Assembly (NCBI RefSeq): GCF_006345805.1 | Contig: NC_043008.1 | Span: 36,332,001 to 36,396,000, forward strand | DNA: 64,000 nt | Source of the DNA: Octopus sinensis | Lineage: Eukaryota | Direction of reading: 5' to 3' | In this document: one piece after another, positions 4,602 through 58,882 of the stretch | How positions within the stretch are numbered: the stretch's first letter is position 1 | How the letters are laid out: the number at the start of each line of letters is the position of its first letter | The notes under the pieces: model-generated | Databases searched by the model: none | The model's input: the letters and a program-made list of their open reading frames with translations, nothing else | What the model was told of the DNA's origin: nothing | Position numbers and translations under genes: made by a program

Positions 4602-4917
4602 ACAACAACAACAACAAAATAATAATGACGATGATGACGACGACAATAGTTATTCAACACCGTAATCATTTTGTCATGGAATATATATATATTTATAAAT
4701 AATGATAAAATATACATTTGTTATCTGTAGGATGTTTTTTTTCATTTTGAACAGTCATTTATACAGAAGGGAAAAATGCAAAGATTTAGATCAAATTTTA
4801 TAAAATATAGACGCTGCTCGTATAATATTTAAGATAACAAATAAATAGCCGTTGTAAATAGATGCAATATGGATGAACATTAACAACAAAAAGCATAATA
4901 TTAATAGTAAACTAATA

Positions 4918-4926
4918 ATAATAATA

Positions 4927-4960
<34 letters not shown>

Positions 4961-5018
4961 GATGATGATGATGATGATGATGATGATGATAATAATAATA
5001 ATGATAATAATGACGATG

Positions 5019-5070
<52 letters not shown>

Positions 5071-5141
5071 TAATAATAATAATAATGATAATAATAATAA
5101 TAATAATGATAATAATGATGATGATGATGATGATAATAATA

Positions 5142-5174
<33 letters not shown>

Positions 5175-5202
5175 TGATGATGATAATAATAATAATGATA
5201 AT

Positions 5203-5234
<32 letters not shown>

Positions 5235-5280
5235 ATGATGATGATGATGATGATGATAATGATAATAATAATAACAATAA
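4918..5280. repeat. compound (TAA)n/(TGA)n microsatellite
   Basis: Directly visible; source of the poly-I/poly-M/poly-L ORFs. Confidence 0.97.
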
Positions 5281-6083
5281 TTTCATTAGTTTGACAGAGA
5301 CAGACATAAAGTGTGGAGGCGTACGTATAATAATGAAATGATGAAAAAAATGTAAGTATATACGGTATGCACTGAAAAAGAAGGGACACATGCATAGCAT
5401 ACAAAGGTAAAAAAGAAAGAAATGGCGGGAAAATGAGAGGGATGTGGCTTTCCTAATACAGAGAAGCCTCTAGGGATAATCTACTGTCCGAGAATTCCCT
5501 GAAACCCTAGGATCAAGTGCCCTCTCCAATTCCTTCTCTCTCACTCACAGGTCTACACTTAGAGAGGTACCATCCACTCTTGCCATTTTCGCAGCTTTCA
5601 CCCCCCCCTTTTTAGTGAGCTCACTCGAGGAAAGTACTCACCTCTCCACTCTCAATTTCCTTTTCAAGTGAAACTTGAAAAAGTCAGTGAGAGCTCCACC
5701 AAAGAGGAATGTATCTGTCCGCATGCCTTTCAGCCTTGTCCGCCAAACGTCCTCTTTCGCCACAGCCATCAGGCAAAGGAAAACTGCCTTGCCTACCCGA
5801 TTGAAGGAGGGCGGCGGTGCGATCATCACTACAAACTCGGCCGACAGACTGATCGGGCCACACGTGACAGCAGCTGTTCAACATAACCCCACTAGTCAGC
5901 AATGCCCGGACACTGAACGAGGGCGTGCAGAACGGTTTCGTCACTCCGTGCGCGCCTTGGACAAGTCCGTCTGACAGCACATCTGTGCTTGTAGAGTTTA
6001 TCTCGAACCGGTAGCGCTCCTCGGTAGCACTGCCAGACCAAGGACGTCTGGAAATTATCCATGATAGTTTCCGAGCGGAAAGT

Positions 6084-7053: not shown

Positions 7054-8250
7054 TAGAGAAGAAACTCTACTTCGCCTGGAATTACATGATCAGTTCCACC
7101 GTGAAACTAACAACTTAAAGGACCAGGAAGTATCATGGAGGTGGCTCAGCAAAGGTGACGTAAAAAGAATACTGAAAGTATAATCATCGCTGCCCAGGAC
7201 CAAGCATTGAATACCAACTCAGTGAAAAGGGATATATACCACACAAGTGCAACGACACTCTGCAGAATGTGTGGGAAGAGGGTCGAAAGCGAGACTCACA
7301 TTGTTAGTACTTGTGAAAGTCCAGCGCAGAGAGAGAACAAGCGCTGACTCAACAAGGTAACCCAAAACATTCACTGACTACTATGCCAGAAGTATGGATA
7401 CAAGGTAACGGGTGCTCAGCGCCAACACACACCGGAAAAGGTAATGGACGAAAAGGGGAAGGTAAAACTCCTCTGGGACTCCGACTTTCAGACTGACAAG
7501 GTGTTAGAGCACCGAAGGCCGGATATAGTAACCTTTAGGAAGGACAAACAAGAGTCCCTAATAATTAAAGTGGCGGGGCCAGGAGTTCAACATATTATCA
7601 TGAAAGGCAGAGAAAAGATTGATAAATTTGGGGACCTGAGATTCGAGATGGCTAAGATATGGCAGCTACGAGAGTCAAACATAAAAGTTGTTCCTATTGT
7701 CATCGGAGCATTGGGTTCGATACCACCCAATCAGAAGACACATCTGGAAACTTTAGAAATACCCTACGATCTAGGTGTATTGCAAAAATCGGCATTACTT
7801 GGAACTACGATCCAGAGTAATTGGCCAGGCATAGTCATTAAAGACGGAGAAGAAAATACTGGTAGATTAATAGATATAAGTGTTCCCACTGATAAAAATA
7901 TATCTTTTTTATAACAGTTCTCGCATGTTAAAGCGAGAACTGTTCCTGTTATTGTAGGTGCCCTAGGTATAATAAGAAAGGGACGTCAAAAACCTCTAGA
8001 TAATATCCCAGATGAACCGTATCTCAGAGAAACACGAAAGATTGTGCTGACAAGTACTGCCCACATCCTTAGAAAAACTCTATCTATTTAAATGTATGAG
8101 TTGTATTACATGAAGATATTTCGCTGCTGTCCTGCCACTTCTTCTCCTCAAGTTTTCAGTGAAACTGTAACATCTCTTATCCTTCAGTTGCCCTAGGATG
8201 CTGGGTTTGGCAGTAGTATAATGATAACCGGGGTTGTACATTTTACCCAC
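7054..8250 (+). mobile_element. R4/Dong LINE fragments (two subfamilies abutting): CCHC knuckle and RLE domain
   Basis: SWRWLSKG..., IIAAQDQALNTN, CRMCGKRVES.THIVSTC, KLLWDSDFQTDKVLEHRRPDIV, VVPIVIGALG. A second RLE C-terminus (VPVIVGALG...TAHILRKTLSI*) starts at about 7811. Confidence 0.85.
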
Positions 8251-9712: not shown

Positions 9713-10400
9713 CACTTCTGTCATAACAGTTTTGTTTATTAACAATTGCTTGGCACATCCCCAAACTCCCTTATTCACAGCTGTTTGTTCTGCTGTGATG
9801 ATGTTATTACTTTCACAAGGGTCTTGGGGGAAGTGGTTTAAAACATGTTGTATATAATTTGCACATTAGGTTCTAGCCGGTAGTTTTATGCCATATGGGT
9901 TCTGCATTGAGATCAGTTTTGTCTCTGCCAGAGCTAACCAGTGTGGTATGCTACTATTTCCATTGAGAGCTTGCTTGTATAGGTTGATAAGATATGGTCG
10001 GTAGAAGGTTAGCTTTTTGCCACAGTATCCAACAATCAAGTCGCTTCTAGGTGCTTCTCCATCCTGAAGTTTTTGGATTACAGTCATAAAAGTATCACCA
10101 TCGGTGCTGTATGTCTTGGGTGTAGTGTAGGGAAAACAACTTCGCATTTCTTCCAGCCACAGAGCATCTTGGTTAAACTCTGTCTCTTTGCTCCAAAATT
10201 TTCTTCGGAAGGAATCTATGTCTTCTTGTGAAGGAGCTTCTATGATGTTCACTGCTTCTCCTCTCATATCTCTGTACGCTGTTGTCTGGTTCTGGTTAAA
10301 TTTTTTGTTTAATTGCTTTTTTCTCAGTTATTTTCTTTTGATGTCGGAGTTTCTCACTGACACCTTTTAGCTTCTTTTTGAGGGTGATCAGTTTGCAAGT
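9712..10400 (-). mobile_element. R4/Dong LINE fragment, pre-RT region to early RT
   Basis: APRSDLIVGYCGKKL..IPHWL...T.LI (decayed APG.D.I.GYW.KKL) and EQTAVNKGVWGCAKQLLINKTV. Confidence 0.7.
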
Positions 10401-17379: not shown

Positions 17380-19986
17380 TTATTGTACAGAAAATATAAT
17401 AATTTAACCACGACCTCTTTGCATCCCCAAGAAATAATTTCTGTGACAGCAAGTGAACTTTACCTTAAGTTTTTACAGTTGTCTCTCTATGAGAAAAGAG
17501 GCCAATCAACACCTGATATTCAAATATCTCATCCAGGAATAAGTAACAATAAGAGGTATATTCATAGCTTTAATTCTGAATGATACCAACGGAAAAGTTG
17601 GCTCGGCGACTTTGAAGTGAAAGATGCATTGTTTTACTTTCTGTGTTTGCCGTTTGGTGATGTAACGTGAAAGAAAAAACCGAAAAACAGAAGTCAAAGA
17701 AGCATGTTGTCGGAGCACTGCATCCTTCAAAACTTCCATGCTTCCTGAGATTCGCCAACACTACACTTGATTTTCTCCCCTCCATACACACACAAGCATG
17801 CATCTGACTCATACATTGTTCGCTTTCCAGACATTTCTACATTACTGCATGTACTTTATATGCACTTTCTGACAAGTTGTGGTGCACCTGAGCACTGTAT
17901 ACAATAATTTCATTATTATTATGTTGAAAATGTAGTTTCACTGCCACTTTTCGGAAACGTAATTATTAAGGAGAATCTACAGACTTTCATCAATGAGCAT
18001 ATCATGAAGGTTAAACAGAACAGAAATTTTATCCAAATTAATTGACTATTTTATTATTGCTTTCATACAGTTTTTCGAGATTAGTGACGAAAAGTTACTG
18101 GAAAAACCATATAAGGATTTGCATTGGGACCTCCTTTCATCGAAAACTGGTGATTGTCGTACGCCGACGACAGGTCAATACCTAGAAACTGCAGTCCGTG
18201 CGTATCACTTAGGTTGACGAGGGAAGGATGACCTCCCTTTGCAAATACCATAAGGGCACAGAAAGTGTGCCTAAAGCCAGCTGGAGACGATGTTCTCCTG
18301 GGGCTACAAGCTACAGTAACACCCACCCTTAGTGGTTAGCCATATTGAGATGGCAAGTATACCTCACATAATTGACTAGTTTATTTTGTGGAAACTTTCA
18401 AGCTTACCTTACGTGGACATGATGTAAAAGATGATTCAGTAAATTCAGAGGTATTTAGAGGATCAATAAATTTTGCACCTAAATAACATCCAAATTTGAA
18501 GAATCACTTAGAAACCACTACGGTTTTCAAAGGTGTTTCTAAACCCATTCAGAATGAGACACTTGACTGCCTGCTACAAATATACCATCAGGACTGAAAT
18601 TAGAGAAGCTTCGTTTGTAGCCGTCGTGGCTGAGGACACAACAAATGTTTCGGAACACAATCAAATGGTCATTGTTCTACTGCACATGCTGAAGGAAGAA
18701 ATATTTGAGCATTTTTGGGAATTCTTTATTCCAGAAAATTAAACTCCAGATGACATATCAAAATATATTCTAGAACAATCTTATAATAATTCTGCTTGTC
18801 ATTGCGTTACTTTTCCCGTCGGTAACGCTTTCACAGTTGAAGGGAAAAAGAGGAGAAAGAAAAAGGAGAGAGAAAGAGGGGAGAGAGAGATGATGATGAT
18901 GGTGGTGGGGGTAGTGGAAGCGGTGGTGGTGGTGATTGGATAGTGAAAAGTATATTTTAAATTGAACTAAGTTTTTTATATCACTTATCACTTAACGCAT
19001 GCGCATAAGTGCAATTCCGTGTAATGTTCACGCTTATTTACGTGGCAGATATATGTAATTTAACTAAAAGTTGTATCATATGTACGAGATATTTTTTTGT
19101 TTATGGGAAATATGGAAAAATAAGAGTGCATATTTATTTTATGAGTGCTGTAAAATTGTGCGTAAAGTATTAATATATAAAGTGCATGAAGTAGTCATAG
19201 TATTCCAATTTCTTTCACTTTTCAATGAAAAGCAGATGGGCGACTATCTTTCCATACAGACACAACAACAGATTACGCCTTCAGATTTTTCGGATAAAAT
19301 TTTCAGAAATAACCCAATAGGTTTTACTATTAATTCCGTGAACTATTCACCGGTTCCGCTAGTGAGAAATAATCCTTCAAGGAAAAAGGCAAAAACAGAT
19401 AGCTCAGACATTTGACGGTACAAATGTCATGAAAGGCAAAAAAGCAGGAGCTCAAGAAAATATAGAAGCAGTTTATAATAATGCACATTTCATTCACCGT
19501 TATGCTCATCAACTTAATTTAATAACGAAAAAATGCAGCAAGAATTACACAGAAACGCAAAAATATTTTTCTCCAACATTTTGGCTATTTCAACATTCTT
19601 CTCAAGATCACCGCAACGTATATCTATTCTCAAGAAGCATATGGACGTCAGCATTCTACGTCCATCCTCTACAAGGTGGAACTTTAACAGAGTTCATGAA
19701 AATTTTGCGATGTTTAAACAGTCATCCAGGGATCAAAGAGAAAATTATTAACCTTTTCGCTCAAGGCAAAACAAGAAGATGGGATTTCATTTTAAAACGG
19801 ATGAATCGAGCTTGAACCGTAATAATTTATTAGAAAGCAAACAATAATGTTTTCGCTTAGGATTTTATCAAGTTCATGAATAAATTTTCTTTTACATGTT
19901 CCTTTCGTTTTACACAATATTAAAACGATGGTCAAAAATTTTCTGAAGCAGCCCCACCCACTAATTTTAGTCACGCGCTGCCACTG
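17380..19986 (+). mobile_element. fossil hAT transposon (ZMYM1/DUF4371-type transposase) with nested insertions
   Basis: FNSE*YQRKSWL...DALF (TTF-type Zn finger), LRGHD...FKGVSKPIQNE...FVAVVAEDTTNVS, AQTFDGTNVMKG, H.YAHQLNL, RPSSTRWN. Probable right TIR ...GCTGCCACTG at 19986. Many stops and frameshifts. Confidence 0.8.
17715..17915 (+). mobile_element. probable LINE 3' tail with (ATT)n, inserted in the hAT fossil
   Basis: Interrupts the transposase homology and ends GCACTGTATACAATAATTTCATTATTATTAT. Clade assignment (CR1/L2) is from recall only. Confidence 0.45.
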
Positions 19987-21960: not shown

Positions 21961-23221
21961 TTCTGTAGGGATGGAAGACAAAATTGACTCGGGAGGGAAA
22001 ATAGAATAGATAAAACTAAATGCGATAATTTCATTTAATATGCCATGTTACCCTGTTTTGACTACCCATGGGGATCAATTTTAAAGAGTGGTTGTGAAAT
22101 GCTAAAGCTCTTATATCTTTCCGAACGGCCATAAGCTTTTCACGTGAAGCGAAGTAGCTTCAATTAAAGATCGACATGAAGTCGTTGTCTATATTCTCCA
22201 GGAACCTACCATAATATTATGCAGTCGCAATATTTATGGATTGTTACTGAAATAAAATAGAAAACCTGGAAATAATACGGTAGATATAAAAATAAGCTAT
22301 TCTTTAGAGTGTCGTTTTATTTTCCACATTATTCAACAATTGAATCTGTTTATCCCCAGGCAACAAATTTACCGTCTTTTATTCCACCAAGAAACACAAT
22401 TCAGTGTGATCATTTCATGAAATATCTGCAACTTGATATTAGATTCATTTTGATCTGGAAATTTAGTTTTCCATTAATCTCCTTTCTTGCATACAATATT
22501 TACCCACCCAAAATAATTTAGACTAAGACGAGAGAAAATAATTATTTTTATGTCATGTGTCTAATAATAAGCAGGCATGATAATAAATATTAACTAATTA
22601 TTCGAAAACGAAACAGAAATAAATATTGTTTTCCCTTCTAAAATAAGTTGCAGTCCAATAGCCCGAAGAAAATATCGAAATATAATTTAAAGTTGTATTA
22701 AGTTATAAATAATCTTTTAAAGTAGAGATTCTTTAAATGCTTCAATGACAATATCCAGAAGATCCCAACACAACCTGAAAGTTCGTTTTGTATTGAATGA
22801 ATAGTAAGTATGACGAGTTTGCGAGTTTGTTTTCATTTTCTGTAGCCAATAGTTCTCTCTTCACTGATAATCGACATGAACTAAACAAATCTTGCAATAT
22901 AGATTAATGTCTGTCCGTATTCTTTAAACATTGAGTCTCAGTTCATATCTTAAGTTTGAGCGAAGTCTTTTGTCAGTGTTCATTCGAACTGTTATTTTTC
23001 TTGTCCTGTAACATGGTGCAAAGTCACTACCACCATTAAAAAAAAATTGTATGCTTATTTTGTTTGTTTGTTTGCTTGCTTGTTTCTCATCGTTCCCATT
23101 TGTAAATAATTTAATACCATTTTTTTTCTCTGCGAATGTTTTTCAGGTCATTTAATATGTTTGTTTAACACGAAGTTTCTATTATTTTTTCTTCAGTTTC
23201 CGTGAAATTACAATATTTACA

Positions 23222-23575
23222 TTAGCGGGCCGATTGCCGTCGCATCGCTTCTGTATAGAAAGTAAAACACATAGCATAATCGCTTCGACCGGGATCACAA
23301 TAATGAACACAACTCAAAACGATATGTCTATTTAAACAATAAGAACATATACGGTTACAATATGCACTACCCGATTGTCTTGAAATTCTCCGTGGGATGC
23401 TATTCTCTGGTAAGCTATGAACTTTGTTAGCACGCTTAAAAAGTGTGTTTTCTCGGTAAAATCTTGGATTGATTTGGTTCAGATGTAGGCTTTGTGTTTG
23501 GTCTGGTGATCGCCAACACCGATACTGTTGGATGTATGCAAAACCAAGCAAACTGAGCCAGACAATTCGGTACAT
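23222..23575 (-). CDS. secreted six-cysteine neuropeptide/hormone precursor (eclosion-hormone-like / synenkephalin-like Cys scaffold), 117 aa
   Basis: Acceptor TTTCCGCTTTGTCTATTTCCAG|A immediately before the ATG at 23575. Signal-like MYRIVWLSLLGFAYI, KR47-48, RRISR62-66, Cys at 73/77/80/89/93/103, RR112-113, TAA stop. Unique, non-repetitive sequence. Confidence 0.8.
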   Translation of the reverse strand: MYRIVWLSLLGFAYIQQYRCWRSPDQTQSLHLNQINPRFYRENTLFKRANKVHSLPENSIPRRISRQSGSAYCNRICSYCLNRHIVLSCVHYCDPGRSDYAMCFTFYTEAMRRQSAR

Positions 23576-23972
23576 TCTGGAAATAGACAAAGCGGAAATA
23601 TGCAAAAATATTACTCGGAAGTCTTAGTTATAGCTGATGACAATAATGTCTACTGAATTAAGTAACGGTTAAGGTATTCAACGTAAAGCATTATAATAGA
23701 CGTTGTAAAAAAACACAAGGGAGGGGAAAACACTGAAATCAATTCTGACGCATTCCCATCAATTACAGTGTCTGTGTGTTGCTGCGAAATTGGGTAACCA
23801 TGTTACGTAATTACAAAGTAACTCCTAACTGCGAGGGATCAATGTGACACACACACACACACATACACACACACACACGGCAATTCAAAAGTGTAGATAG
23901 CCACCAACTCGGGCTGAGTGCTGCATTGGAAATGCACCGATTTTCTATTTTGCTTTATATATATATATATAT

Positions 23973-24984: not shown

Positions 24985-25410
24985 GCCACCACCACCACCA
25001 CCACCACCAGAAACAAGGAAGACAGATTAACGGGGGGGGGGGGAGGAAATGTACTTATAATGCTAACGAGTAAGTCCCACTCATCTTGTATCCCCTAAAC
25101 ATCATATCCCCTAAACCTCATGTCCCTTAAACATCATATCTCACATGAAAAAAGACAATCAACTTCAATAGGGTTTGAAACCAGAACATTGACGGCATGA
25201 ACTAATCCGGTGCTCTGCCGCCTCATCTCACGATAATTATTTGTATTTAGAAGGAAGAATATAGAACATGAAATGAGTGGTTGGGGAGAGTAGGTGAGAT
25301 TTCCGGGGTTTTCCCATCTTTAATTTAGAACTAATTAATAAAACACACACATATACACACATGCACACACATGCATACGCACACATACACGCACATACAT
25401 ACGCACACGG

Positions 25411-25455
<45 letters not shown>

Positions 25456-25516
25456 GTATATATATGTATATATATATATATACACGTATATATATATATA
25501 TGTATATATATATATG

Positions 25517-25570
<54 letters not shown>

Positions 25571-25623
25571 CATATATATATATACATGTATATATGTATA
25601 TATGTATATATATATATATGCAT

Positions 25624-25717
<94 letters not shown>

Positions 25718-26012
25718 TATATGCACGCACACACAGGATTGGCAGAATCACTAACGCATCGTATTGTATTATTCTGCGTTTTCACACACACACACACACG
25801 TACGCACGCACAAACACACACACAACATACACACACACAAACACACACACACACCCACACGCACGCACCACGCACTCACACACACACACACTGTCTGTTC
25901 CAACCGAGTTCTATGAATTGGAAGAAGAAATATGTGGGCAGAATCAATGAGAAAATGAACGAGAAGAAATTAACAGACATTTCGTTGTGGTTGTTGTTTT
26001 TGTTGCTGTCGG

Positions 26013-26045
<33 letters not shown>

Positions 26046-26303
26046 CGACGATGATGATGATGGTAACAATGATGATGATGATGACAATGATGATGATGAT
26101 GATGATGACAATAATAATGGTAGTGGTGGTATCTGTGGTAATGATGATGGTGGTGGTGGTGGTGGTGGTGGTGGTAGTAGTAGTAGTGGTAATAGTGATC
26201 TGGTGGTGATGATGCTGATGATGTCGACAACAATACTGACGGTCATTATGATAATGATGACGACGATGAAAACGTCGGCGATAATGACGATGATGAGGAT
26301 GAA

Positions 26304-26348
<45 letters not shown>

Positions 26349-27370
26349 GCGGAAGAGGAGGAAGAGAAGGAGAAGAACGACAATGTTGGTTGTAATGCGA
26401 ATAATCGATCTGTTCAATCAATCAGTTAGCCAATGACTTCATTGCCAAAGATTAATATTGCTGATGATAATTAAAATGATAATTAATCAAGATGATTTTA
26501 TTTATCTTTTTATTTATTATCGTATTTTTCTGAGTTATATTTTTTCTTACGAGAAACTCTGAGTAGTGTTTCAAGAGAACTAATATAGTATTTTAATTTT
26601 CCATCTATATTATATAAAAAAGAAGAAAAAAAATTGTTCTTTTAATCAACTTTTTTTCTTCTGAACAAATATTTTTAAAGAGGTTATAAGAATTATGTCA
26701 ATAATAAAAAAAAAAATTGTGTTTCTACAAAAAAATTAATTTATAATATTCTATTTTATTTTTGAGACCGGAATGAGATTACAAAAAATAGCATACAAAG
26801 GAAGAATCATTTTTTTCAGAACTAAAAATAGAATTATGTTTTATTATAATTATGCTTTATTATCCAGAAACGAGAAACGAAGGTCGACGTTATTAAAGCC
26901 AGTGAGTACTGGCGATGTTATAAGCGTGTAATCCGCTCACCATATTCCTTCCCCTTTTGTTGCGGGAGTGTGGTCTAAGTAGTCAATGTATCAGGTTTTC
27001 AATACAGTGACCAACGCATGTTGGATTTCTATATACAGACAAGCCTTAATGGAATGCGATTATCAAATTACGCAAAACGTGACGGGCAAGTTATTAGCAA
27101 TAAACTGTAAGAGATTTTAAAGTACAAAATAGAAAAGAATAATCTAATTTTAGTAAGGTATTAGTAATAAAAAATACTAGAGTGGAGGGGCACCAATTGA
27201 CATGAAGGGCCTCAGCTCATGAGAAAAGGCATCACAGTCATCAACAAGTTAGTAGCAAAGATGGCCAATAGCGATTTAATCCATTGACGGCAATTGGAAC
27301 AGTTGTGTGCAGTTTGTGTTCAACACTTAACCGAACTTATTACAGACTGGAGTGACTCGAGACGGTGACT

Positions 27371-27581: not shown

Positions 27582-29336
27582 ATCGTACTTAAAATGTCTG
27601 CTACAACTCTCAGCTCGAGAGATGAAATCGTCTCACGATTATCATTTGTAACCAACTTGGTAACAGTTAAGGACATTTGTCCTCGAAATATAATGAAGTA
27701 GCTTCATCAGTTATACTTTGCTTTTTCATTAGTAGGCAGTGGCAAACTATGAACGCAGACATTGCAAACTATTGTTAGACCTATTGTAGCGGATCTTGCT
27801 ATGTTTGTGTCTCTTTCTTTTTCTTGGTGTTTCATACATTTCAACCAGGCAAGTTTATTCTTTTCTTTTTAAGTAATCGCCCACTGCCATCCTTCATTGT
27901 CCGTCACTGTCATCTTCCCTATTATTGCAATCACACCATCCACTTCATTGAAATGTCTTTTTATGACATTCTTATACGCTTCTATATTTTAGCTCGCTGT
28001 AGATCATAGCATTGGCGATTCTAGTGTCCTCCAATTGAAGTATATGTTTCACTCAGCCTACTGTGATTCCTGCAGACCAGTCTCAATACGAAGCATATAT
28101 AGATGCTACAGGATCTTTTAGTTTAATTGGTAATGGTGCTGAAAACTATTAATGGCAGGAATTCACTGGACAAGCTGTGTGGAGAAAATCTCCAGAACTG
28201 GATAGTCTACACAAGAAGATTTATTTGAACATATCACACTTACTTCTCTTTTGCTAGATTCTGCAGTAATTTGCAGTAAATTGCTTTTGTTTTTATTTTA
28301 CTGCATACTCATGGACAAAATGTGGCACGCGTGATACGTTTTTTTCAGCATCTCTGAGACTGGTGACAGGAAAAGACAAGTTCTCTTGAACCTCGAGGTA
28401 AGGCTTTAATTCTCGTAACAGAGTGAATTCCGTTAGAGGCGTCTAAGGTGGATGCTAATCTGAGAGACACATAAAATTAACAACCCAGTTATTCAGCCCT
28501 AGAACCAACGCAAATACCACAAAATATTTCGATCCTTACTTCAACAATTCCACCAACCCACCGACATGGACTGGTATTTTATTTTATCGAGCCTGAAAAG
28601 TTGAAATATCACAATCACTAGTTTTCTTGGGCAATGAAGAGCAAGAAGCTTTCATCTGCCTGCTTGGTATTTGTGGGTAGTAAAGAAATAGGTATTTATT
28701 GAAATCTCATTTGAAGTAAAATAGAAGGAAGGAGAGAGAGGAGAGAAAGATATCCTGCTCTTTATATATTTATCTCTCATTCCCGTCCATTTCTAGGAAT
28801 AACACCACCACAACCAACTACAACCTGTGCACATTGCAACAACCATCAATACTACGGTTATCGTTTCAATCTGGCGTAGCTTGTTACTACAACTGCAGCT
28901 ATTGCAATTATCATAGAATGATCACCACAATTAACATTACCATTACCAGATACAACCATCACAATAGTCAGCACCACCACACCAACCACCAGATACCTAA
29001 CCAAACACGCTGCTGCTGTCACCCACATTAATAAACGCTTGCTTAATTTACTAAATAACTTGTTTAGATTTGACTAATTACAAACTAAAAGGCAAAACCT
29101 TGTTAACAATATAATAATTGTTTAATAACATGGCTGTTAGGGATGTCTGTGCGTGTGTGTGTTTGTGCGTGTGTGCGTGTATGTGTGCGTGTGTGTTTGT
29201 GTGTGTTTGTTTGTGTGTGTGTGTATGTGTGTGTGTGAGTGTGTGTGTTTGTGTGTGTGTGTGTGTGAACGATTGCATGTTTTATAATGGATATGTGTGC
29301 ATGAATTACTTTGGAAGTGTATAATACATACATACA

Positions 29337-29368
<32 letters not shown>

Positions 29369-29451
29369 CACATATATGTACATAGATGTGTGTATATATG
29401 TGTATGTGTGTGTACGTGTGTGTGTATGTACATATGCATGCTTGTAAGTAT

Positions 29452-29500
<49 letters not shown>

Positions 29501-30014
29501 GTGTGTGTGTGTGGTGTGTGTATGTATATGTATGCAACTATGTATATATGTAATTGTGTACGCACGCATGTATATATTGTATACAATGTGTACGTCCAGA
29601 ATATACATGCACACGATTGTTCATATACATACACATATATGTACACACACACATACACAGATACACACATACACACACATACACACATATACATACGCAC
29701 ACACACACACACACACACACACAGTTGTTTTCGTTTATAATTGTGTCTGTGGAGAGTCTGCAGGCAGACGTGGTGATAATTGCTGTAGCAGCGGTGGGAG
29801 GGGCGGCGCCGATGGTGTTGCTGCTGCTGCTGCTGCTGACGATGGCGATGATGATGATAATGGTGATGCTGGTGCTGGTGGTAGGTAAGATGGCGGCGGG
29901 AAGACGTAAAGAAGAACAAGAACATGATAAGATAAGATACCCAAAATAACAAACAACACCACTGCCACCAGTTACAACAGCAGACTACAACAACTGTCAC
30001 AAGAGTAACATCAA

Positions 30015-30383
30015 ATGTGTGTGTGTGTGTGTGTGTGTATGTGTGTGTGTGTTTGTGTGTGTGTGTGTGCGTGTGTGTTTGTGTGTGTGTTTGTGTGTGT
30101 GTTTGCGTGTGTGTGTATGTGTGTGTGTGTTTGTGTGTGTGTGTGTTTGTGTGTGTGTATGTGTGTGTGTGTTTGCGTGTGTGTGTTTGTGTGTGTATGT
30201 GTGTGTGTTTGCGTGTGTGTGTTTGTGTGTGTGTGTGTGTGTATGTGTTTGTGTGTGTGTGTATGTGTGTTGCGTGTGTGTGTGTGTGTGTGTATGTGTT
30301 TGTGTTTGTGTATGTGTGTGTATGTGTGTATGTGTGTTTGTGTGTGTGTGTTTGTATGTGTGTGTGCGTGTGTGTTTGCGTGT

Positions 30384-30415
<32 letters not shown>

Positions 30416-30480
30416 TTGTGTTTGTGTGTGTGTGTATGTGTGTGTGTTTGTGTTTGTGTGTGTGTGTATGTGTATAGTGT
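30015..30480. repeat. long interrupted (GT)n microsatellite
   Basis: Directly visible. Confidence 0.97.
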
Positions 30481-30749
30481 TTTCTTAAGAAGCCGTTTAA
30501 GCGAGCAACAGGTTTGTTCGGTGGTGGTGGTCGTGGTGGTGGTTATTTCTTCGAGTAATTAAAATTATTCCCACCTTTTTCTCTCGTTTCGCTAATTTCA
30601 TTCAAGTCAACTGCGATTTTATCAATTAGTTTCAATCAAGTATTTAAACATTCAGTTAATTAATTGTTCGTTCACTTTAGACAAAAGATTGATGACGATC
30701 GAGCTGGTAGGAATGTCGAACAAGGAATCAACGAGTCGAGGTTTCATAT

Positions 30750-31060
30750 CACCACTGCCACCACCACCACCACCACCACCACCACCACCACCACCACCAC
30801 CACCGCCGCCGCGCCCGCCGCCGCCGCCACCACCACCACCGCCACCACCACCACCACCGCCACCACCACCGCCGCCACCCCACCACCCCACCGCCATCAC
30901 CACCACACCACCACCACCACCACCACACCACCAACCACCACCACCACCACCACCCACCACCACCGCCGCCACCACCACACCACCAACCACCACCACCACC
31001 ACCGCCACGCCACCACCACCACCACACCACCACCACCACCACCGCCGCCGCCGCCGCCGA
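30750..31060. repeat. (CCA)n/(CCG)n trinucleotide tract
   Basis: Directly visible; gives poly-P/T/G/W ORFs. Confidence 0.95.
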
Positions 31061-31434
31061 CCAATCTCCTTGCGCTGTCTCCGTAGCCATTTCGAAATTG
31101 GTTTGGAGACGGCAGAAATGCGGATAGAATGTCTTGGAGTAAATTCTCGCTAATGGAGTAAACTCTGTGTGGTTGTTCGATCTACGAGAAATAGCTGTTA
31201 AATCCCCCCATCAAATCCATACCCTAATCGCCTTAGAAAACGATGTGATGGATAATGAGATTCTGTGGCTTTGTATGTTTGAAAAAGGCGGGATGGTCAT
31301 TGCTAGAATGATTTTGATTAGTGTTGAACTAAAGATAAACACCACCACTACCGCCACCACCACCACCACCACCTAGACCTTCAGCCGTCCCTCTCCTCAC
31401 CTAAATATTTTCATTACTATATTACACCTGCTGA

Positions 31435-36457: not shown

Positions 36458-36905
36458 AATAAAAATATTTACACTTTTAAGAGGTATGAGTGCATATATA
36501 ATTGCATGTAAACGTGTGTGTGTGTGTGTGTGTACATATAAATAAATATATTTATGAGCTCACCTATTCTTTGACAATTTTAAAAATAAATGATGCAATT
36601 TTGGGACAGTGTTTCATATATCTTTAATGATAATAAAATTTATATGTGTGTTTCCATACAGGTTTATGTAAATGTGCAGATGCATATATATATAGAGATA
36701 TATACATTGTGTTCAGTTATAATAAGTTATAATAGTACAAGTTTACTATTTCATAAGCAAGAATGTTGTTGATAGTGACTTCAAAATTTCGGCCAGCTAA
36801 GCCATCGTATATGTATGTGTGTATGTATGTATGTATGTATGCTTGTATGTATGTATACATATGTGTGTATGTATATATATATTTGTATGTATATGTATAT
36901 ATATG

Positions 36906-36977
<72 letters not shown>

Positions 36978-37215
36978 CATATATATACATATATATATAT
37001 ATACATACACATATACATATATATATATATACATATATATACATATACATACAAATATATATATACATACACATATACATATATATATATATATATACAT
37101 ATATATACATATACATACAAATATATATATACATACACATATACATATATATATATATATACATATATATACATATACATACAAATATATATATACATAC
37201 ACACATATGCATACA

Positions 37216-37249
<34 letters not shown>

Positions 37250-37295
37250 CATACATACATACATACATACATACATACATACATACATACATAGA

Positions 37296-37327
<32 letters not shown>

Positions 37328-37599
37328 CGATGGCTTAGCTGGCCAAAAATTCGAAGTCACTATCAACAACATTCTTGCTTATGAAATAGTAAACTTGTAC
37401 TATTATAACTTATTATAACTGAACACAATGTATATATCTCTATATATATATGCATCTGCACATTTACATAAACCTGTATGGAAACACACATATAAATTTT
37501 ATTATCATTAAAGATATATGAAACACTGTCCCAAAATTGCATCATTTATTTTTAAAATTGTCAAAGAATAGGTGAGCTCATAAATATATTTATTTATAT

Positions 37600-38039: not shown

Positions 38040-38945
38040 TAGTCCTATATCTTGATGGCGATATTGAGATATTTGATGCTATGCAGTGGCGCCTCGTTCT
38101 GCTGTTTGTATAACTATCAATGCCAAAGTTTGATACAAGTCCTTCCAGGATTTTCCAGATGTATATCACTGCGTATCTTTCACACCTCGTTCCAGGGGCT
38201 AGAATATTAACCTGTTCAGCCCTTCTCAGTAGCTGATATGTTGCACTGAGACGACCTTCTTTTCGTAACTTCGCTGGATTGCTTCGAGTTCTGCCATTAA
38301 TTTTACGCTGTGACCAAAGCTGGGAGCAGTAGTCTGAGTGGCTGAGGACATATGTCCTTCAGACACCATCATGGTTTCTTGCTCTCTTGTTTTGAAAGTT
38401 CTAAGGATCTATACGGTCAGCCGTCTGCATTTTATTGCCAGCTAAATAATATACAGATGGAAAGATGCATCATTACTCATGTGAATGCCCAGGTTGCGCA
38501 CTGATTTTGATTGAGCTATTGCAGTCCTTTCTGGGCGCGTGTATCCTGGTTGCATTTCATTCAGTTTTGTGTGCTGGTAGCGCAGGGCTTGGATTTTCCA
38601 GCATTAAACTGCAAGTTATTGTTCTCAGTTATTGTTCTCAGTTATTATTAAACTGCAAGTTATTGTTCTCCACCTGTATATTGTGTCCAGTTCCTGTTGT
38701 AGGTACTCAATATATCTAGGGTTCTATATCCGCTGAAAGACTTTTGTATCTTCTGCATAGCTAGCAAGGGTGGCTATCTGAGCAGCTGAGGGCATGTAAG
38801 AAAAGGTCACTATGAACTGCAATGGCCCTAAGTCAGTGCCTTGTGGTATTTTACTTACTCTTTGTGTTTTCTTAGAGGTGACTTCGTTGTCCACTACTGC
38901 CTGATATTCAGAAAGTCGTGTATCCACTCTTTAAGTGTTCCTACA
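38040..38945 (-). mobile_element. CR1-clade LINE fragment (RT core and C-terminus), rearranged
   Basis: EWIHDFLNIRQ, IPQGTDLGPLQF...SYAEDTK, ILRTFKTR..DYCSQLWS, IYIWKILEGLVSN. Confidence 0.8.
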
Positions 38946-39020
38946 ATACTGAGATGCATGTATGTATGTATGTATGTATGTATGTATGTATGTATGTATG
39001 TATGTATGTATGTATGTATG

Positions 39021-39052
<32 letters not shown>

Positions 39053-39599
39053 TGTATGTATGTATGTATGTATGTATGCATGAATGCATGCATGTATGTA
39101 TGTATGTATGTATGTATGTATGTATGCATGCATGCATGCATGCATGCATGTATGTATGTATGTATGTATGTATGTATGTATGTATGTATGTATGTATATG
39201 TATGTATGCATGTTTGCATGTATGTATGTATGTATGTATGTATGTATGTATGTATGTTGATAAATTGATGAGCAGAAGCAAGAAATTGGATGTCAAAACG
39301 GAACTCCGGCGCACGCCGTATTAAATAAAATGAGAGACCGGAAGAGTTCCGTGAAGACACGCGAAAATCTGATAAAAATCTACTGCTGCAAGAGATGAAA
39401 GACCGGCGGAGACCATAAACACTCATAAGACACGGTTGAAAGCTTATCTGTTGTTGAGAGGGGCAACATTGTTTTTACCAAATTTCTCCAAAGCAAGGGT
39501 GAAGGATGTTATAAGAGGTTCTTGCTTTTCCGATTCCATGCTGAAGGTCCTTAAGGGATGGATCCGACAACTCTTACGTAGATGACAACCCTTCACTTT

Positions 39600-46216: not shown

Positions 46217-46726
46217 AATTAATATTATTATTATCATTGAGGGAGAGAGCAGTGCATACCATCACAGTGACACTGGGGTAAAATATACGAAGCCCATATA
46301 CCCATCATGACTACCCGTCTGATAAGGTACACCAGGCACATGCATCACAACCATATGTGCGCGACATGGTGATCTCATATTAAGATAAACAGCACATGAC
46401 CTTGCAGGTGGGGCCCAGTTAGAATTTTCTTCAGGTTGAGTAGCCCATCCCGCTCAAACGGTCCCTGAATAAGGGTTGTTTAAGGATGTTGAAAGAACCA
46501 CCCATGTTTCCAGAGGTGAACTATTCAAACCCCAAAGAATCCCTCTCAACACATGGCTATGATGCTCCCCCACTACTTCTGCTCGTGATCAGAGATGCAC
46601 ATATCGTCAGCCACTAAGGGACATGCTCAACTGGTTAAGGTCAAACAACTGACAAGCAAATCTGTGGTATTGAGCAGAATATTTGCTGTAGCCCATCTTT
46701 TATACCAAGACAAAACAATGTACATG

Positions 46727-46789
<63 letters not shown>

Positions 46790-46798
46790 ATTACTATA

Positions 46799-46860
<62 letters not shown>

Positions 46861-46876
46861 TATTAATATTACTATA

Positions 46877-46935
<59 letters not shown>

Positions 46936-46942
46936 TTATTTA

Positions 46943-47025
<83 letters not shown>

Positions 47026-47519
47026 CATTATTATTATTTACTTTTAATCTGCATGTTTGTAACAATCACTTGCCGAGTCACACCCAGCGTACAAGGGTGA
47101 GTGAAGGATAAGAGATATTTCAGTATGACGGAAAGCTTGGGGAGAGGAGGTAGTGAAATATGTTTATTTAATACAACACAGACATTTAAATGGATTCGGT
47201 TTTTCTAAGGTTGTGGGCATTACTCAGCACAATCTTTTGGATTTCTCTGAGATATGGTTCTCCTGGGATCTGATCTAGATGTTTCTGAGATCCCTTTTTT
47301 TTTATAATACTTAGGGCACCTACAATAACAGGAACAGTTCTCGTTTTAAGATGCCACATCTTCTGTATTTCAATTTCTAGGTCCTTATATTTACTTAGTT
47401 TGTCAAATTCTTTGAAAAATATATTTTTATCAGTGTGAACACTTACGTCTATTAGTGTATACGTATTTTCTTCCCTGTCTTTAATAATCATGTCTCGTCG
47501 ATTAGCCTGGATCGTTCAG

Positions 47520-47859: not shown

Positions 47860-49697
47860 GTGATTAAAACACAGCTTATTTTGCTGGATATCAGCTGTCC
47901 ACAGCCAACAGACTAAGGTGAGACTTGTTTACTGGTTATGCTTCAAGTACTCTGGGAAGAATTCTTTGATTATTATTATTGTTATTATTATTATTTTGGT
48001 TTGGACTAAGTTCGGTCTTATTTCTGGTAGGAGCTGTACTAAACTGGGTTTTATGCCTATTTCCTTTATCCAACTGTTCGGATCTTTAGGGATAGTTCCC
48101 AATGCACCTATAACTACTAAGATACACTTTACCCGCACTTTCATAGTCTCTCTAATTCAATGACTATATCCTGGTACTTAGCTATTTTTCTATACCTCTC
48201 ATATTGATTATTTCATGATTTAGGATCGTAAATAGATTATCTGGCCCATTATATTCTTTTTATCTACTACTACTAAATCGGGTCTTCTAGCTTCTATGAC
48301 TTCGTCAGTCTGAATGTTAAAGTCCCACAACATCTTGTATTTCTTACTTTCTAGTACTTTACTAGGTTCATGTTCATACCGTTTATCAGTATGTTCAAAT
48401 TCTAAGTTTCTACATAACTCCCAGTGGATTACTCTCCCTAGGTTGTCGTATCTTTTCTTATAATATTCTATCTGTGCCAGCATGCTACATACACTTACTA
48501 TATGAGTAACACTTTCTTCTCTTGTTTTGCATAACCTACATTGAGAATCTATTTTGTTTTTTGTTTATCTTGGCTTTTATCCAATTAGTCCTTAATGCTT
48601 GATCTTGTGCAGCTACTGACAAACTTTCTGTTTCCTTTTTCAGCTTTCCTTTCTGCAGTTACAACCATGTCTCACTACAACAATCATTGGGAATCTACCA
48701 TGCAACGCCTTCCCCTGGAAGTCAGATAATTTCTATTTTTCTGGTTTTAAAGTTCGTTTGGTGTTTTAGTTTCCCCATGTCTTGCTGTGACTCTAGCAGC
48801 TTTTAATTCTTCACTATTACCTACATAAGAGTCTATATCTACTCTAGCCAACTCCACGCAGTCTTCTACTGATATAAACCCTCTTCCACCTTCCTTTGTA
48901 GGTAGGTGTAATCTTGCTATTCCTGCCCTTGAGTGAAGTCCTCCAATCATATTGAACTCCTTCCTAGTTCTTCTATCTAGCTTTGCTAATTCTGCTTTTG
49001 GCCAATCTACAAAAGCAGCTGAGTATCTAAGTAATGATACTGCCCAAATATTTACAACCTTCTCTAGATTCGGACCATTTAGCATTGACTTCATTTGCTT
49101 CCTCACCCTTCTGATGTACTCCTCAATTTCATTTTCATTTCTATAGTCAGTACTCTGTCAGATTCCAATACTCCTAGATACGTATAACTCTCTCCTCGTT
49201 TCAATGATTTTAATGTCTGGCTATCTGGTAATTGGATGCTTTCGCTGTTGACCACCTATCCCCTTTTCATGACTAATATTGTGCACTTATCTATGCCAAA
49301 TTCCATGGCTATATCTTTGCTGAAAAGACTTACAGTTAGCATTAAGGAAACTCTTTTTCATTCTTACTAAAAAGTTTCAGGTCATCCATGTAGAGCAAAT
49401 GGTTACTTTTTTTCCTTACTGTTTCTGAATTGATACCCTACCTTTACCTTCCTTAATACTAAAGTGAGGGCGATCAAACATAAGACAAACATCGAAAAGG
49501 GGACAACGAGACCCATGGAAAAATCTTCTTTTGATATTAATTTTCCCTAAGAGTGTGTCACCTGACTAGAAATTTACTTTCCATTTCTGCATACTAAATC
49601 TAATTAATTCTCTTATGTTGTCTCTTATACTGAATGTACTCAACCATTCACTTATCCGCGTGTGTAGGATCATGTCAGGCATTCCTATAATCTATCC
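47859..49697 (-). mobile_element. 5'-truncated R4/Dong LINE: RT, CCHC knuckle, RLE, 3' UTR, (TAA)n tail
   Basis: NHLLYMDDLKLF at about 49370-49405, LDRRTRK...LHSR...RLHLP.KEGGRG, CRLCKTREESVTHIVSVC, LWDFNIQTDEVIEARRPDLVVVDK. Frameshifted. Confidence 0.92.
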
Positions 49698-57855: not shown

Positions 57856-58361
57856 ATGCAAAACAAAAATAAAAAGATTAATGAAAAAAAAACCCAAAAA
57901 CATCATAGGATAAAGTATCATGGGGTAATAAATACCTTTACAACTTTCGGTCCTGGTCTTTATACTACAGATATGTTTCAAAGTTTTCTGCGTTGATCTC
58001 TCAATAACAATGAAAGCGAAGAAGGTTCAACCACACTACGATAGTCACACTTCAAGTTTTTGTGTTCTCTACCTATTTTTCTTCTTTTTTTTTTTTCCTT
58101 TTTACGCTCTCACTCCGCCCGGTATGTTACTGTTATACTTTACAAGGCAAGTTCTATTTTGCTGAATGAAATTTTCTCTTAAGTGTTGTCACTTATAACA
58201 CAAGGATCTAAATAAATATATATAAAAAAAAAATAAAATAAATACTTAAATAAATAATGAAGATAAAAATACTCGGTCACATGTCACACATATAGGTTGG
58301 GCTAGTTGAATAATCACACGATAATAATAATAATAATGATAATAACTTTAACAGTAATAAA

Positions 58362-58399
<38 letters not shown>

Positions 58400-58416
58400 T
58401 GATGATGATGATGATG

Positions 58417-58462
<46 letters not shown>

Positions 58463-58499
58463 TAATAATAATAATAATGATGATGATGATGATGATGAC

Positions 58500-58555
<56 letters not shown>

Positions 58556-58882
58556 TGATGATGATGATATTGATCTTAACCGCAACCAACAATGATATGA
58601 GTAACAATAGCAACAACAATGACGACGAAAACAACAACAAATCTCTTGGTTTTTATCAATGAGGGAGTCCGTTTATGGCCAGCCAGACAGCTTACTCTCA
58701 AATGTGTTTTAGGAAATACCTTGCACACGTGTATTTCGTTGTGAACTTATGACTCGCGTACATTGGATCGCCGAGGACAAACTAATTCTCTTATCAAATA
58801 AATTTTTTTTCTCGAATATTTGGGAACTAGTTGCTGCTGCTGCAGTTGTTTATGTTGTTGTTGTTGTTGTTATTATTATTAT

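Follow-up and report, generated by a model that had tools for sequence, protein, structure and literature searches.

An Octopus gene with a prepropeptide-like layout whose six-cysteine domain shares cysteine spacings, but no detectable homology, with eclosion hormone

We analysed a stretch of 64,000 nucleotides from Octopus sinensis (contig NC_043008.1, positions 36,332,001 to 36,396,000), referred to here as the window, and describe an open reading frame on its minus strand. The frame starts with an ATG at 23575-23573, continues for 117 codons (23575..23225) and ends with a TAA at 23224-23222, while the frame called by the program reaches back to a TTG at 23605. A single base, the A at 23576, lies between the ATG and the AG of a polypyrimidine-AG acceptor, and a scan of the window gave about 0.001 acceptor-like sites per base. 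This arrangement had been described in a first-pass annotation made from the letters alone, and we confirmed it. The same annotation had called the sequence unique and the genome cephalopod-type. Within the window the 117-codon region indeed occurs once, and tblastn revealed no paralogue of the 117-aa candidate elsewhere in it; a Pfam search with eight other non-repetitive ORFs of the window gave no match. The cephalopod assignment agrees with the complete identity of the frame to a protein of Octopus vulgaris, CAI9731006.1 (Table 1).

Table 1. Features of the candidate gene; positions are those of the window
Feature	Position	Strand	Remarks
Precursor coding sequence, 117 aa + TAA	23222..23575	-	Residues 23-139 of O. 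vulgaris CAI9731006.1, 100% identity
3' splice acceptor, polypyrimidine tract + AG (23578-23577)	23577..23600	-	Exon start 23576; sequence tttccgctttgtctatttccAG
Residues 1-22 (MYRIVWLSLLGFAYIQQYRCWR), signal-peptide-like N-terminus, hydrophobic core residues 4-15	23510..23575	-	Identical in both Octopus species
Residues 23-66, pro-region	23378..23509	-	S29N and S65P are the sole differences between the two Octopus species
KR, residues 47-48	23437..23432	-	Putative processing site
RRISR, residues 62-66	23392..23378	-	Putative processing site, followed by Gln67
Residues 67-111 (QSGSAYCNRICSYCLNRHIVLSCVHYCDPGRSDYAMCFTFYTEAM), six-Cys domain	23243..23377	-	Twin CX3C (C73-X3-C77 ... C89-X3-C93) + C80 + C103
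Residues 112-117 (RRQSAR), C-terminal tail	23225..23242	-	RR at 112-113; RQQSSS in O. bimaculoides
Two ATTAAA poly(A)-signal-like hexamers	23156..23151 and 23115..23110	-	66 and 107 nt past the stop; consensus match only (pattern scan)

The 117-codon frame corresponds to the last exon of the annotated gene for CAI9731006.1. At the junction this protein reads ..KEIE|MYRIV, while reading through the acceptor would yield ...ISR-MYRIV; the last Glu codon of the extension consists of GA from an upstream exon and the A at 23576, and the read-through codon would be AGA (Arg). Because the two sequences differ, the O. vulgaris model must splice at exactly the AG at 23578-23577. The gene range of CAI9731006.1 is 144.8 kb and the upstream exon lies outside the window. 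An upstream exon had been implied from the sequence and does exist in the annotated model; the donor proposed for it, GTAAGTG at 28243, is therefore left without support in the window, where GTAAGT occurs 23 times. The annotation of O. vulgaris drew on PASA assemblies of Iso-Seq and RNA-seq data, on ab initio calls and on protein alignments (PMC10700109). For an exon lying as far as about 144 kb upstream, a transcript is a likelier source than a protein alignment. The annotations of O. vulgaris and O. bimaculoides are not fully independent of each other, since the O. bimaculoides proteome was used in the annotation of O. vulgaris (PMC10700109). The annotated start of the 139-aa CAI9731006.1 places 22 extra residues ahead of the hydrophobic segment. 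In the public model the start probably lies 22 codons too far upstream, so that the signal-like N-terminus is hidden.

Taken alone, neither the length of the frame nor its hydrophobic N-terminus exceeds what chance would produce in this DNA. In 48% of Markov-1 simulations of the window an ATG frame reached 117 aa or more, and 27 of the 124 ORFs of this AT-rich window have a hydrophobic N-terminus. The frame stands above chance because of evidence from outside, namely an orthologue in O. bimaculoides and the annotated splice at exactly this AG. The orthologue, A0A0L8GHS8, also has 117 aa, of which 104 are identical (89-90%), and keeps 7/7 Cys; start, stop, length and frame are the same in both species, which diverged about 34 My ago (PMC10700109). 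Conservation of the six Cys and of the open frame in another octopod had been named as a check on the first reading, and both are kept in O. bimaculoides. We regard the locus as probably a genuine protein-coding gene with a real-looking terminal exon.

In its layout the product corresponds to a secreted prepropeptide, with conserved KR and RR..R sites and six conserved Cys. The Kyte-Doolittle maximum (2.31 for a 9-mer) falls on residues 4-12, and the O. bimaculoides orthologue is named 'Secreted protein' in UniProt. The KR, the RRISR and the Gln after the RxxR site were found at residues 47-48, 62-66 and 67, as the first-pass annotation had it, and KR47-48, RR62-63, R66 and Gln67 are identical in both Octopus species, where RRISR appears as RRIPR in O. 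bimaculoides. The RR that was thought to close the mature peptide is present at residues 112-113 of the O. sinensis frame but is not conserved, being RQ in O. bimaculoides. The pro-region could release two linear peptides, SPDQTQSLHLNQINPRFYRENTLF and ANKVHSLPENSIP; neither has a Gly amidation signal, and they match no known peptide family. The six Cys of the C-terminal domain (C73, C77, C80, C89, C93 and C103) are spaced 3/2/8/3/9, that is C-X3-C-X2-C-X8-C-X3-C-X9-C, in agreement with the spacing given earlier. That description made no mention of a seventh Cys, C20; with seven Cys in the precursor, C20 would stay unpaired unless it is lost with the signal or pro-region.

Divergence between the two species is much lower in the N-terminal half of the protein than in its Cys domain. 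Only 1 of the 13 differences falls in residues 1-64, of which 63 are identical, and 12 fall in residues 65-117 (P = 3e-4). Eight substitutions are located in the six-Cys domain, none of them at a Cys, although the conservation of the six Cys alone is not significant (P = 0.2).

The first reading placed the protein in the fold of eclosion hormone (EH) and of the N-terminal Cys domain of opioid precursors. The EH spacing that it gave, 3/2/12/3/10, agrees with real EH sequences, and C1-X3-C2-X2-C3 and C4-X3-C5 are indeed common to the candidate and to 29/29 canonical EH domains. The other sequence tests speak against membership. The proposed search against PF04736 and PF01160 gave no match to either Octopus protein at E <= 10, nor did any other Pfam family, while PF04736 detects the true O. 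bimaculoides EH at 28.7 bits (cut-off 25). From published ligand sets we built EH profiles, arthropod-only and lophotrochozoan ones, and used held-out controls. With these the O. bimaculoides EH proper reached 33-34 bits, and each of the 31 lophotrochozoan EH-type sequences, those of the 8-Cys group included, had a positive score (4.5-38 bits), whereas the candidate obtained -2.7 to +0.5 bits overall and -1.4 to -2.7 bits with the arthropod-only and lophotrochozoan profiles. Alignment of the candidate with the EH alignment by hhalign had a probability of 0.2-0.5%. The C3-C4 loop comprises 8 residues in the candidate and 12-13 in 29/29 EH domains, and the C5-C6 loop 9 residues compared with 10-14 in the 29 domains. 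EH domains carry a Gly (25/29) and an aromatic residue (29/29) in loop 3-4, a Gly in loop 5-6 (28/29) and D/N before C6 (29/29). Loop 3-4 of the candidate (LNRHIVLS) contains neither Gly nor an aromatic residue, the Gly in its loop 5-6 is Ser in O. bimaculoides, and the last three residues before its C6 are YAM, with no D/N. Moreover, the published EH ligand set assigns two other O. bimaculoides genes, Ocbimv22037767 and Ocbimv22024629 (PMC6660194), to which tblastn found no match and no EH exon in the window. With regard to opioid precursors, the candidate contains no YGGF core and its Cys domain is C-terminal, while that of opioid precursors is N-terminal. Both memberships were rejected: that of EH on Pfam, EH profiles, hhalign, loop lengths, non-Cys residues and the separate EH genes, and that of opioid precursors on the missing Pfam match, the missing YGGF and the position of the Cys domain at the opposite end. 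We have thus shown that the gene is not the octopus EH and is not a detectable homologue of EH or of opioid precursors.

What the candidate has in common with EH is best read as a recurring twin-CX3C solution and not as a sign of family membership. It comes down to a twin CX3C hairpin frame and one additional Cys pair, and such a frame is found again in proteins that are not related. When the six-Cys domain was modelled alone, AlphaFold2 predicted three helices with moderate confidence (domain residues 3-17, 20-26 and 32-49; mean pLDDT 71.6), while the full-length model was unusable (pLDDT 42). The first two helices cover both CX3C pairs of the frame C73-X3-C77-X11-C89-X3-C93 (pLDDT about 70-80), and Foldseek found no match to the domain model in the PDB below E = 5. 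The twin CX3C helical hairpin is a motif class and not a homologous family.

Relatives of the gene were sought widely, and so far it appears, on present sequence records, only in two species of the genus Octopus. A word-indexed search of 5.8 billion clustered proteins returned the two Octopus entries only. Exhaustive phmmer against 1.84 billion representative proteins found no other animal relative and one extra match, the bacterial protein P0003 (E = 3.3e-4, 37 bits). The candidate protein had no match in the O. sinensis and other cephalopod proteomes, where the gene could have been missed by annotators or could be truly absent. Exact-product look-ups of the 117-aa frame, a 127-aa frame and the O. 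bimaculoides protein returned none on record, a metagenome scan gave no match, and a sequence search of the PDB gave noise only. The peptide strings and accessions occur in no paper found by literature search, and the candidate is absent from the accessible parts of the supplements of a mollusc-wide neuropeptide survey. Within these limits, the earlier statement that no named molluscan peptide matches is upheld by the protein and literature searches.

Overall, our data make it reasonably probable that the locus is the terminal exon of a protein-coding gene so far known only from Octopus, and that this gene encodes a secretory prepropeptide which would yield a disulfide-stapled helical peptide. 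The hydrophobic N-terminus would direct the precursor into the secretory pathway, where a prohormone convertase or furin may cut at KR47-48 and at R-R-I-S/P-R66. Cleavage would set free a C-terminal domain of about 45-51 aa starting at Gln67, which may be cyclised. For the form that ends in TEAM the computed mass is 5181 Da, which would fall to about 5.16 kDa with a pyroglutamate (about 17 Da less) and three disulfides (about 6 Da less). The released domain is predicted to fold as a small three-helix bundle stapled by three disulfides, with C73-C93 and C77-C89 as the probable pairs of the twin CX3C hairpin and C80-C103 as the putative third. Outside the cell such a product might have a signalling or pheromonal role or serve as a secretion/venom-type peptide. 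A more far-reaching version, which we put forward only tentatively, is that the gene may be the founder of an octopod-restricted family of stapled three-helix peptides, either arisen de novo or descended, with extreme divergence, from an EH-type gene; the near-invariant prepro-region and fast-evolving Cys domain would then be as in venom and pheromone families, with a signalling, pheromonal or salivary/venom role.

Other explanations have to be weighed against this reading. The gene might be a third, extremely diverged paralogue of the EH superfamily, in which the fold and the pairing C1-C5/C2-C4/C3-C6 were kept while the loops were shortened and the similarity became undetectable. The equal number of Cys and the two identical spacings fit such an origin, as does a helical prediction for a relative of a helical hormone; several divergent EH-type lineages are already present in molluscs, and there is a weak echo between the cephalopod EH tail DSPTLHLN and TQSLHLN in the pro-region of the candidate (E = 3.6). 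We nevertheless consider this origin unlikely. The arthropod-only and lophotrochozoan profiles recover every other EH-type sequence, even the 8-Cys group, and leave the candidate below zero; Pfam and hhalign are equally negative, both loops are too short, loop 3-4 has neither the Gly nor the aromatic residue, C6 is not preceded by D/N, and a conserved pro-region of 44 residues precedes the Cys domain. Descent from, or common ancestry with, a bacterial twin-CX3C repeat family (Acidobacteriota: Terracidiphilus, Silvibacterium) would account for the match to P0003, the sole non-Octopus hit of the exhaustive search, which in pairwise BLASTP shows 29% identity over 83 residues and extends into the pro-region; profiles of this hairpin family score about 22-24 bits with the candidate, above the EH score. 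However, the other members reach 4.5-26 bits, with a library-scale E for the family of about 4-11, and only the four Cys that make up the twin CX3C frame are aligned. Soil bacteria with 62% GC, whose proteins lack a signal peptide, would have to be the donors of a spliced, AT-rich octopus gene. The relationship was rejected as convergence plus winner's curse, as the family profile scores below P0003 alone. Convergence is the most likely source of the similarity, and a bacterial origin seems to us highly improbable.

Two further alternatives concern the function of the frame. Activity could reside in the linear peptides freed from the N-terminal half at KR and RR (SPDQ...NTLF and ANKVHSLPENSIP), with the Cys-rich part as an accessory or carrier under weaker constraint. 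Conservation in neuropeptide precursors is usually highest in the active peptides, and the accumulation of nearly all differences behind residue 64, together with the conserved KR47-48 and RR62-63, would be in line with this. Yet these peptides lack a Gly amidation signal and belong to no known family, and the C-terminal domain has kept all six Cys. The signal peptide, moreover, is equally invariant, which suggests another cause of the low N-terminal divergence, such as a constraint at the nucleotide level, and we judge active linear peptides to be improbable. There is likewise only a small chance, in our estimate, that the frame is non-functional, a chance frame in a non-coding or mis-modelled transcript exon that was copied between annotations. 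Frames of this length are common in simulated windows, the O. bimaculoides proteome served as evidence for the O. vulgaris annotation, the 22-aa extension of the model resembles a longest-ORF artefact, and other cephalopod proteomes lack a match. Against this stand the persistence of frame, start, stop and length over about 34 My, at 89% identity and with 63 of 64 N-terminal residues and all seven Cys preserved, the strong acceptor one base ahead of the ATG that the model uses, and the coherent order of hydrophobic N-terminus, basic sites and Cys domain.

Behavioural and neuroendocrine novelties of cephalopods have often been sought in taxonomically restricted genes. Should the Octopus-restricted prepropeptide prove real and bioactive, the cephalopod peptide repertoire would gain a lineage-specific ligand. 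Because an invariant prepro-region contrasts with a variable Cys domain, such a peptide might also belong among rapidly evolving secretion products, such as venoms, pheromones or reproductive peptides.

Comparison with known systems shows how far a Cys frame can be shared. Like eclosion hormone (PF04736; PMC6660194), the candidate would be a small, secreted six-Cys peptide with a predicted helical structure, and it occurs in an animal that possesses an EH system, but it differs in the long conserved pro-region ahead of its Cys domain. EH itself pairs its Cys as C1-C5, C2-C4 and C3-C6 and signals through a receptor guanylyl cyclase. With the N-terminal Cys domain of opioid precursors (PF01160) it has in common a frame of the CX3CX2C...CX3C...C type and a prohormone layout that would be cut at dibasic sites. 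The best-scoring likeness outside Octopus is to hypothetical proteins of Acidobacteriota that carry YCEEICRWFASKECVLECLELCGP as a repeat, 3-4 times each (P0003-P0009, loci L002-L008), significant at database scale for P0003 only. They share Y-C-x2-I-C-x8-V-L-x-C-x3-C-x-P with the candidate, a pattern whose Cys occupy relative positions 0, 4, 16 and 20, and differ from it in being about 400 aa long, Ala-rich and repeated, and in having no signal peptide. Matching Cys spacing gives no evidence for a common family: the candidate scores -2.7 to +0.5 bits with EH and about 22 bits with a twin-CX3C hairpin of bacteria to which it is unrelated. Twin CX3C helix-loop-helix structures are also known from the small Tim proteins and from scorpion kappa-hefutoxin-type CS-alpha/alpha toxins. 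Plant alpha-hairpinins (PMC7191063) have the same CX3C-X11-CX3C frame, and the candidate resembles them in its predicted helix-turn-helix, where antiparallel helices would be joined by two disulfides. The likeness is structural only, with no homology in sequence to be expected, and the candidate differs in its third Cys pair, third helix, animal origin and prohormone-like precursor.

We found that the minus strand of the window carries a 117-codon open frame encoding MYRIVWLSLLGFAYIQQYRCWRSPDQTQSLHLNQINPRFYRENTLFKRANKVHSLPENSIPRRISRQSGSAYCNRICSYCLNRHIVLSCVHYCDPGRSDYAMCFTFYTEAMRRQSAR, which matches residues 23-139 of the Octopus vulgaris protein CAI9731006.1 (assembly GCA_951406725.2), publicly named 'Hypothetical predicted protein', at 100% identity. 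The gene model of CAI9731006.1 covers 144.8 kb and adds 22 N-terminal residues, MSMLLSAERKITRKTIITKEIE, whose coding sequence is found nowhere in the window. At the junction the model reads E-M, where genomic read-through would yield R-M. The Glu codon must therefore consist of GA and the A at 23576, so that the model splices exactly at the AG noticed before the ATG in the first-pass annotation; the acceptor itself is a textbook example. The upstream exon implied by that annotation likewise exists in the public model, outside the window. The donor proposed for it, GTAAGTG, is present as a motif but we found no support for its use, and GTAAGT occurs 23 times in the window, both strands taken together.

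The O. vulgaris annotation drew on Iso-Seq/RNA-seq PASA assemblies, ab initio calls and protein alignments, with the O. bimaculoides proteome among the proteins aligned (PMC10700109). Transcript support would most simply account for so distant an upstream exon. The 22-residue extension is probably a longest-ORF artefact; it would bury the hydrophobic segment of the precursor, and the O. bimaculoides model begins at the MYRIV Met without it.

Features of the window and their positions
Feature	Position	Strand	Basis or remark
117-codon frame	ATG 23575 to last sense codon 23225; TAA stop 23224-23222	minus	sequence
Splice acceptor tttccgctttgtctatttccAG, one base 5' of the ATG	AG 23578-23577	minus	sequence
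DQTQSLHLNQ in the pro-region	23477-23512	minus	residues 22-33
Proposed donor GTAAGTG	28237-28243	minus	
(TG)n tract	~23845-23875		~270 nt upstream of the acceptor
Microsatellite/low-complexity tracts	4901-5404, 25237-26436, 29137-31153, 36781-37418, 38918-39426, 46595-47047, 58306-58662		TG/CA-type, TATG/TACA-type, A/T-rich or GC-rich triplet runs
Non-repetitive ORF	7444-7914	plus	
Non-repetitive ORF	9866-10267	minus	
Non-repetitive ORF	19071-19815	plus	
Non-repetitive ORF	48747-49106	minus	

Of the 53 ORFs in the window that reach 110 aa, most come from the low-complexity tracts. The four non-repetitive ORFs show no Pfam match at E <= 0.01 and presumably resemble decayed transposable-element fragments, among them retroelement-like tails and, at 19.4 kb, what may be a hAT-like piece.

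The protein features described earlier, namely the hydrophobic N-terminus, KR47-48, RRISR62-66, Gln67, RR112-113 and six Cys with the spacing 3/2/8/3/9, are all present, together with a seventh Cys, C20, that had gone unmentioned. The exon region is single-copy within the window, as had been claimed; no paralogue is present there, and no other frame in the window has the Cys pattern except for one microsatellite artefact. In 48% of Markov-1 simulations of the window sequence (36% GC) there was an ATG frame of 117 aa or more, and 27 of 124 ORFs in the window have an equally hydrophobic start. Acceptor-like sites are rarer than either (~0.001 per base). On the window evidence alone, the candidate is hardly more than chance; the decisive evidence is external to it.

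The O. bimaculoides orthologue A0A0L8GHS8 (UniProt 'Secreted protein') also has 117 aa, of which 104 are identical, without any indel; the two species reportedly split ~34 My ago (PMC10700109). The orthologue retains all seven Cys, KR47-48, RR62-63, R66 and Gln67; its counterpart of RRISR is RRIPR, and RQ replaces the closing RR. Thus the upstream processing sites proposed at first are conserved, but trimming of the C-terminus is not. The chance that the twelve changes after residue 64 spare all six Cys is P = 0.2, so that the retained Cys are little proof on their own. No residue of the signal-like segment has changed, and the 13 differences are uneven: residues 1-64 hold a single one and residues 65-117 the other twelve (hypergeometric P = 3e-4). 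This would be expected either if the mature peptide evolves fast or if the 5' half of the exon is constrained at the nucleotide level. Genes for venom, antimicrobial and reproductive peptides are known for such a pairing of a near-invariant prepro half with a variable Cys-framed half. The contrast also suits another reading, in which the real products are the conserved linear peptides of the pro-region.

As to the Cys-framed peptide, membership of the eclosion hormone (EH) or opioid-precursor fold had been proposed. The EH spacing given for this was right (29 canonical domains show 3/2/12-13/3/10-14), and molluscs are known from earlier work to have EH-type ligands (PMC6660194; PMC8398477). 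Two sequences from O. bimaculoides are in the published ligand file: Ocbimv22037767 has the canonical six-Cys frame, and Ocbimv22024629 comes from an eight-Cys group. The candidate is neither of them, and neither matches the window. Pfam PF04736 scores Ocbimv22037767 at 28.7 bits (cut-off 25) and gives no match to the candidate even at E <= 10. A profile made solely of EHs of arthropods and onychophorans scored each of the 31 EH-type sequences from lophotrochozoans positively (4.5-38 bits; true octopus EH 33), against -1.8 and -2.3 bits for the candidate from the two species. With a profile from non-cephalopod lophotrochozoan sequences, the EH-type sequences of cephalopods reached 29-38 bits and the candidate -1.4 and -2.7, and an hhalign comparison between the Octopus alignment and one of 22 EH sequences returned a probability of 0.2-0.5%. 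In every EH, both variable loops are longer than those of the candidate, which also lacks the Gly and the aromatic conserved in loop 3-4 and the D/N that precedes C6. The Pfam opioid-precursor model gave no match either; in contrast to opioid precursors, the candidate has no YGGF and its Cys domain is C-terminal. Because all profile tests fail, both memberships are rejected at the sequence level, and the likeness is limited to the Cys frame. The DQTQSLHLNQ stretch weakly echoes the conserved tail at the C-terminus of cephalopod EH, DSPTLHLN(L/V)PEGL, which occurs in O. bimaculoides and Idiosepius; this is probably chance (tblastn E = 3.6).

A word-indexed search of 5.8 billion proteins returned the two Octopus entries and nothing else. 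Just one further match, P0003 (E = 3.3e-4, 37 bits), came from exhaustive phmmer against 1.84 billion cluster representatives; it is encoded on a bacterial contig of 62% GC. Its small, uncharacterised family of ~400-aa proteins, from MAG contigs (L001 558-1400; L002-L008) of soil Acidobacteriota (Terracidiphilus, Silvibacterium, Terriglobales), carries 3-4 twin-CX3C hairpin repeats of YCEEICRWFASKECVLECLELCGP between Ala-rich helical linkers; these proteins lack a signal peptide and match no Pfam family meaningfully. Common to both is Y-C-x2-I-C-x8-V-L-x-C-x3-C-x-P (a twin CX3C-X11-CX3C frame). The remaining members score just 4.5-26 bits against the Octopus proteins, and the family profile 22-24 bits with or without P0003 (E ~4-11 at library size). 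In our reading, the similarity reflects convergence towards a helical hairpin, with a winner's-curse excess in the score of P0003, rather than homology. By score, the candidate is closer to this unrelated family than to EH.

AlphaFold2 gave an unusable model of the whole precursor (mean pLDDT 42). For residues 67-117 alone (mean pLDDT 71.6) it predicted three helices (domain residues 3-17, 20-26 and 32-49), where the first two bear the CX3C pairs and helix 3 could be tied on through C80 and C103; Foldseek of this model against the PDB found no match below E = 5.

The candidate is a spliced, conserved open frame with a hydrophobic N-terminus, a pro-region punctuated by basic sites and a six-Cys domain. 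Its product would enter the secretory pathway, and a convertase or furin would cut after R66 (RxxR; Ile follows the RR) and at KR48. Gln67 may become pyroglutamate, and three disulfides would staple a three-helix peptide of ~5.2 kDa (computed pI 6.9, near-neutral), which would act extracellularly. In agreement with the first reading, which could name no molluscan match, public databases list it only as an uncharacterised entry; its accessions and sequence appeared in no paper that we found, and it is absent from the searched parts of the supplements of the mollusc-wide neuropeptide survey. On sequences from two species, it is plausibly an orphan ligand, a kind of gene that is sought in this animal. 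The candidate is best filed as a lineage-restricted addition to the many secreted cysteine-rich prepropeptides, a broad class, and not as a hormone of the EH or opioid type.
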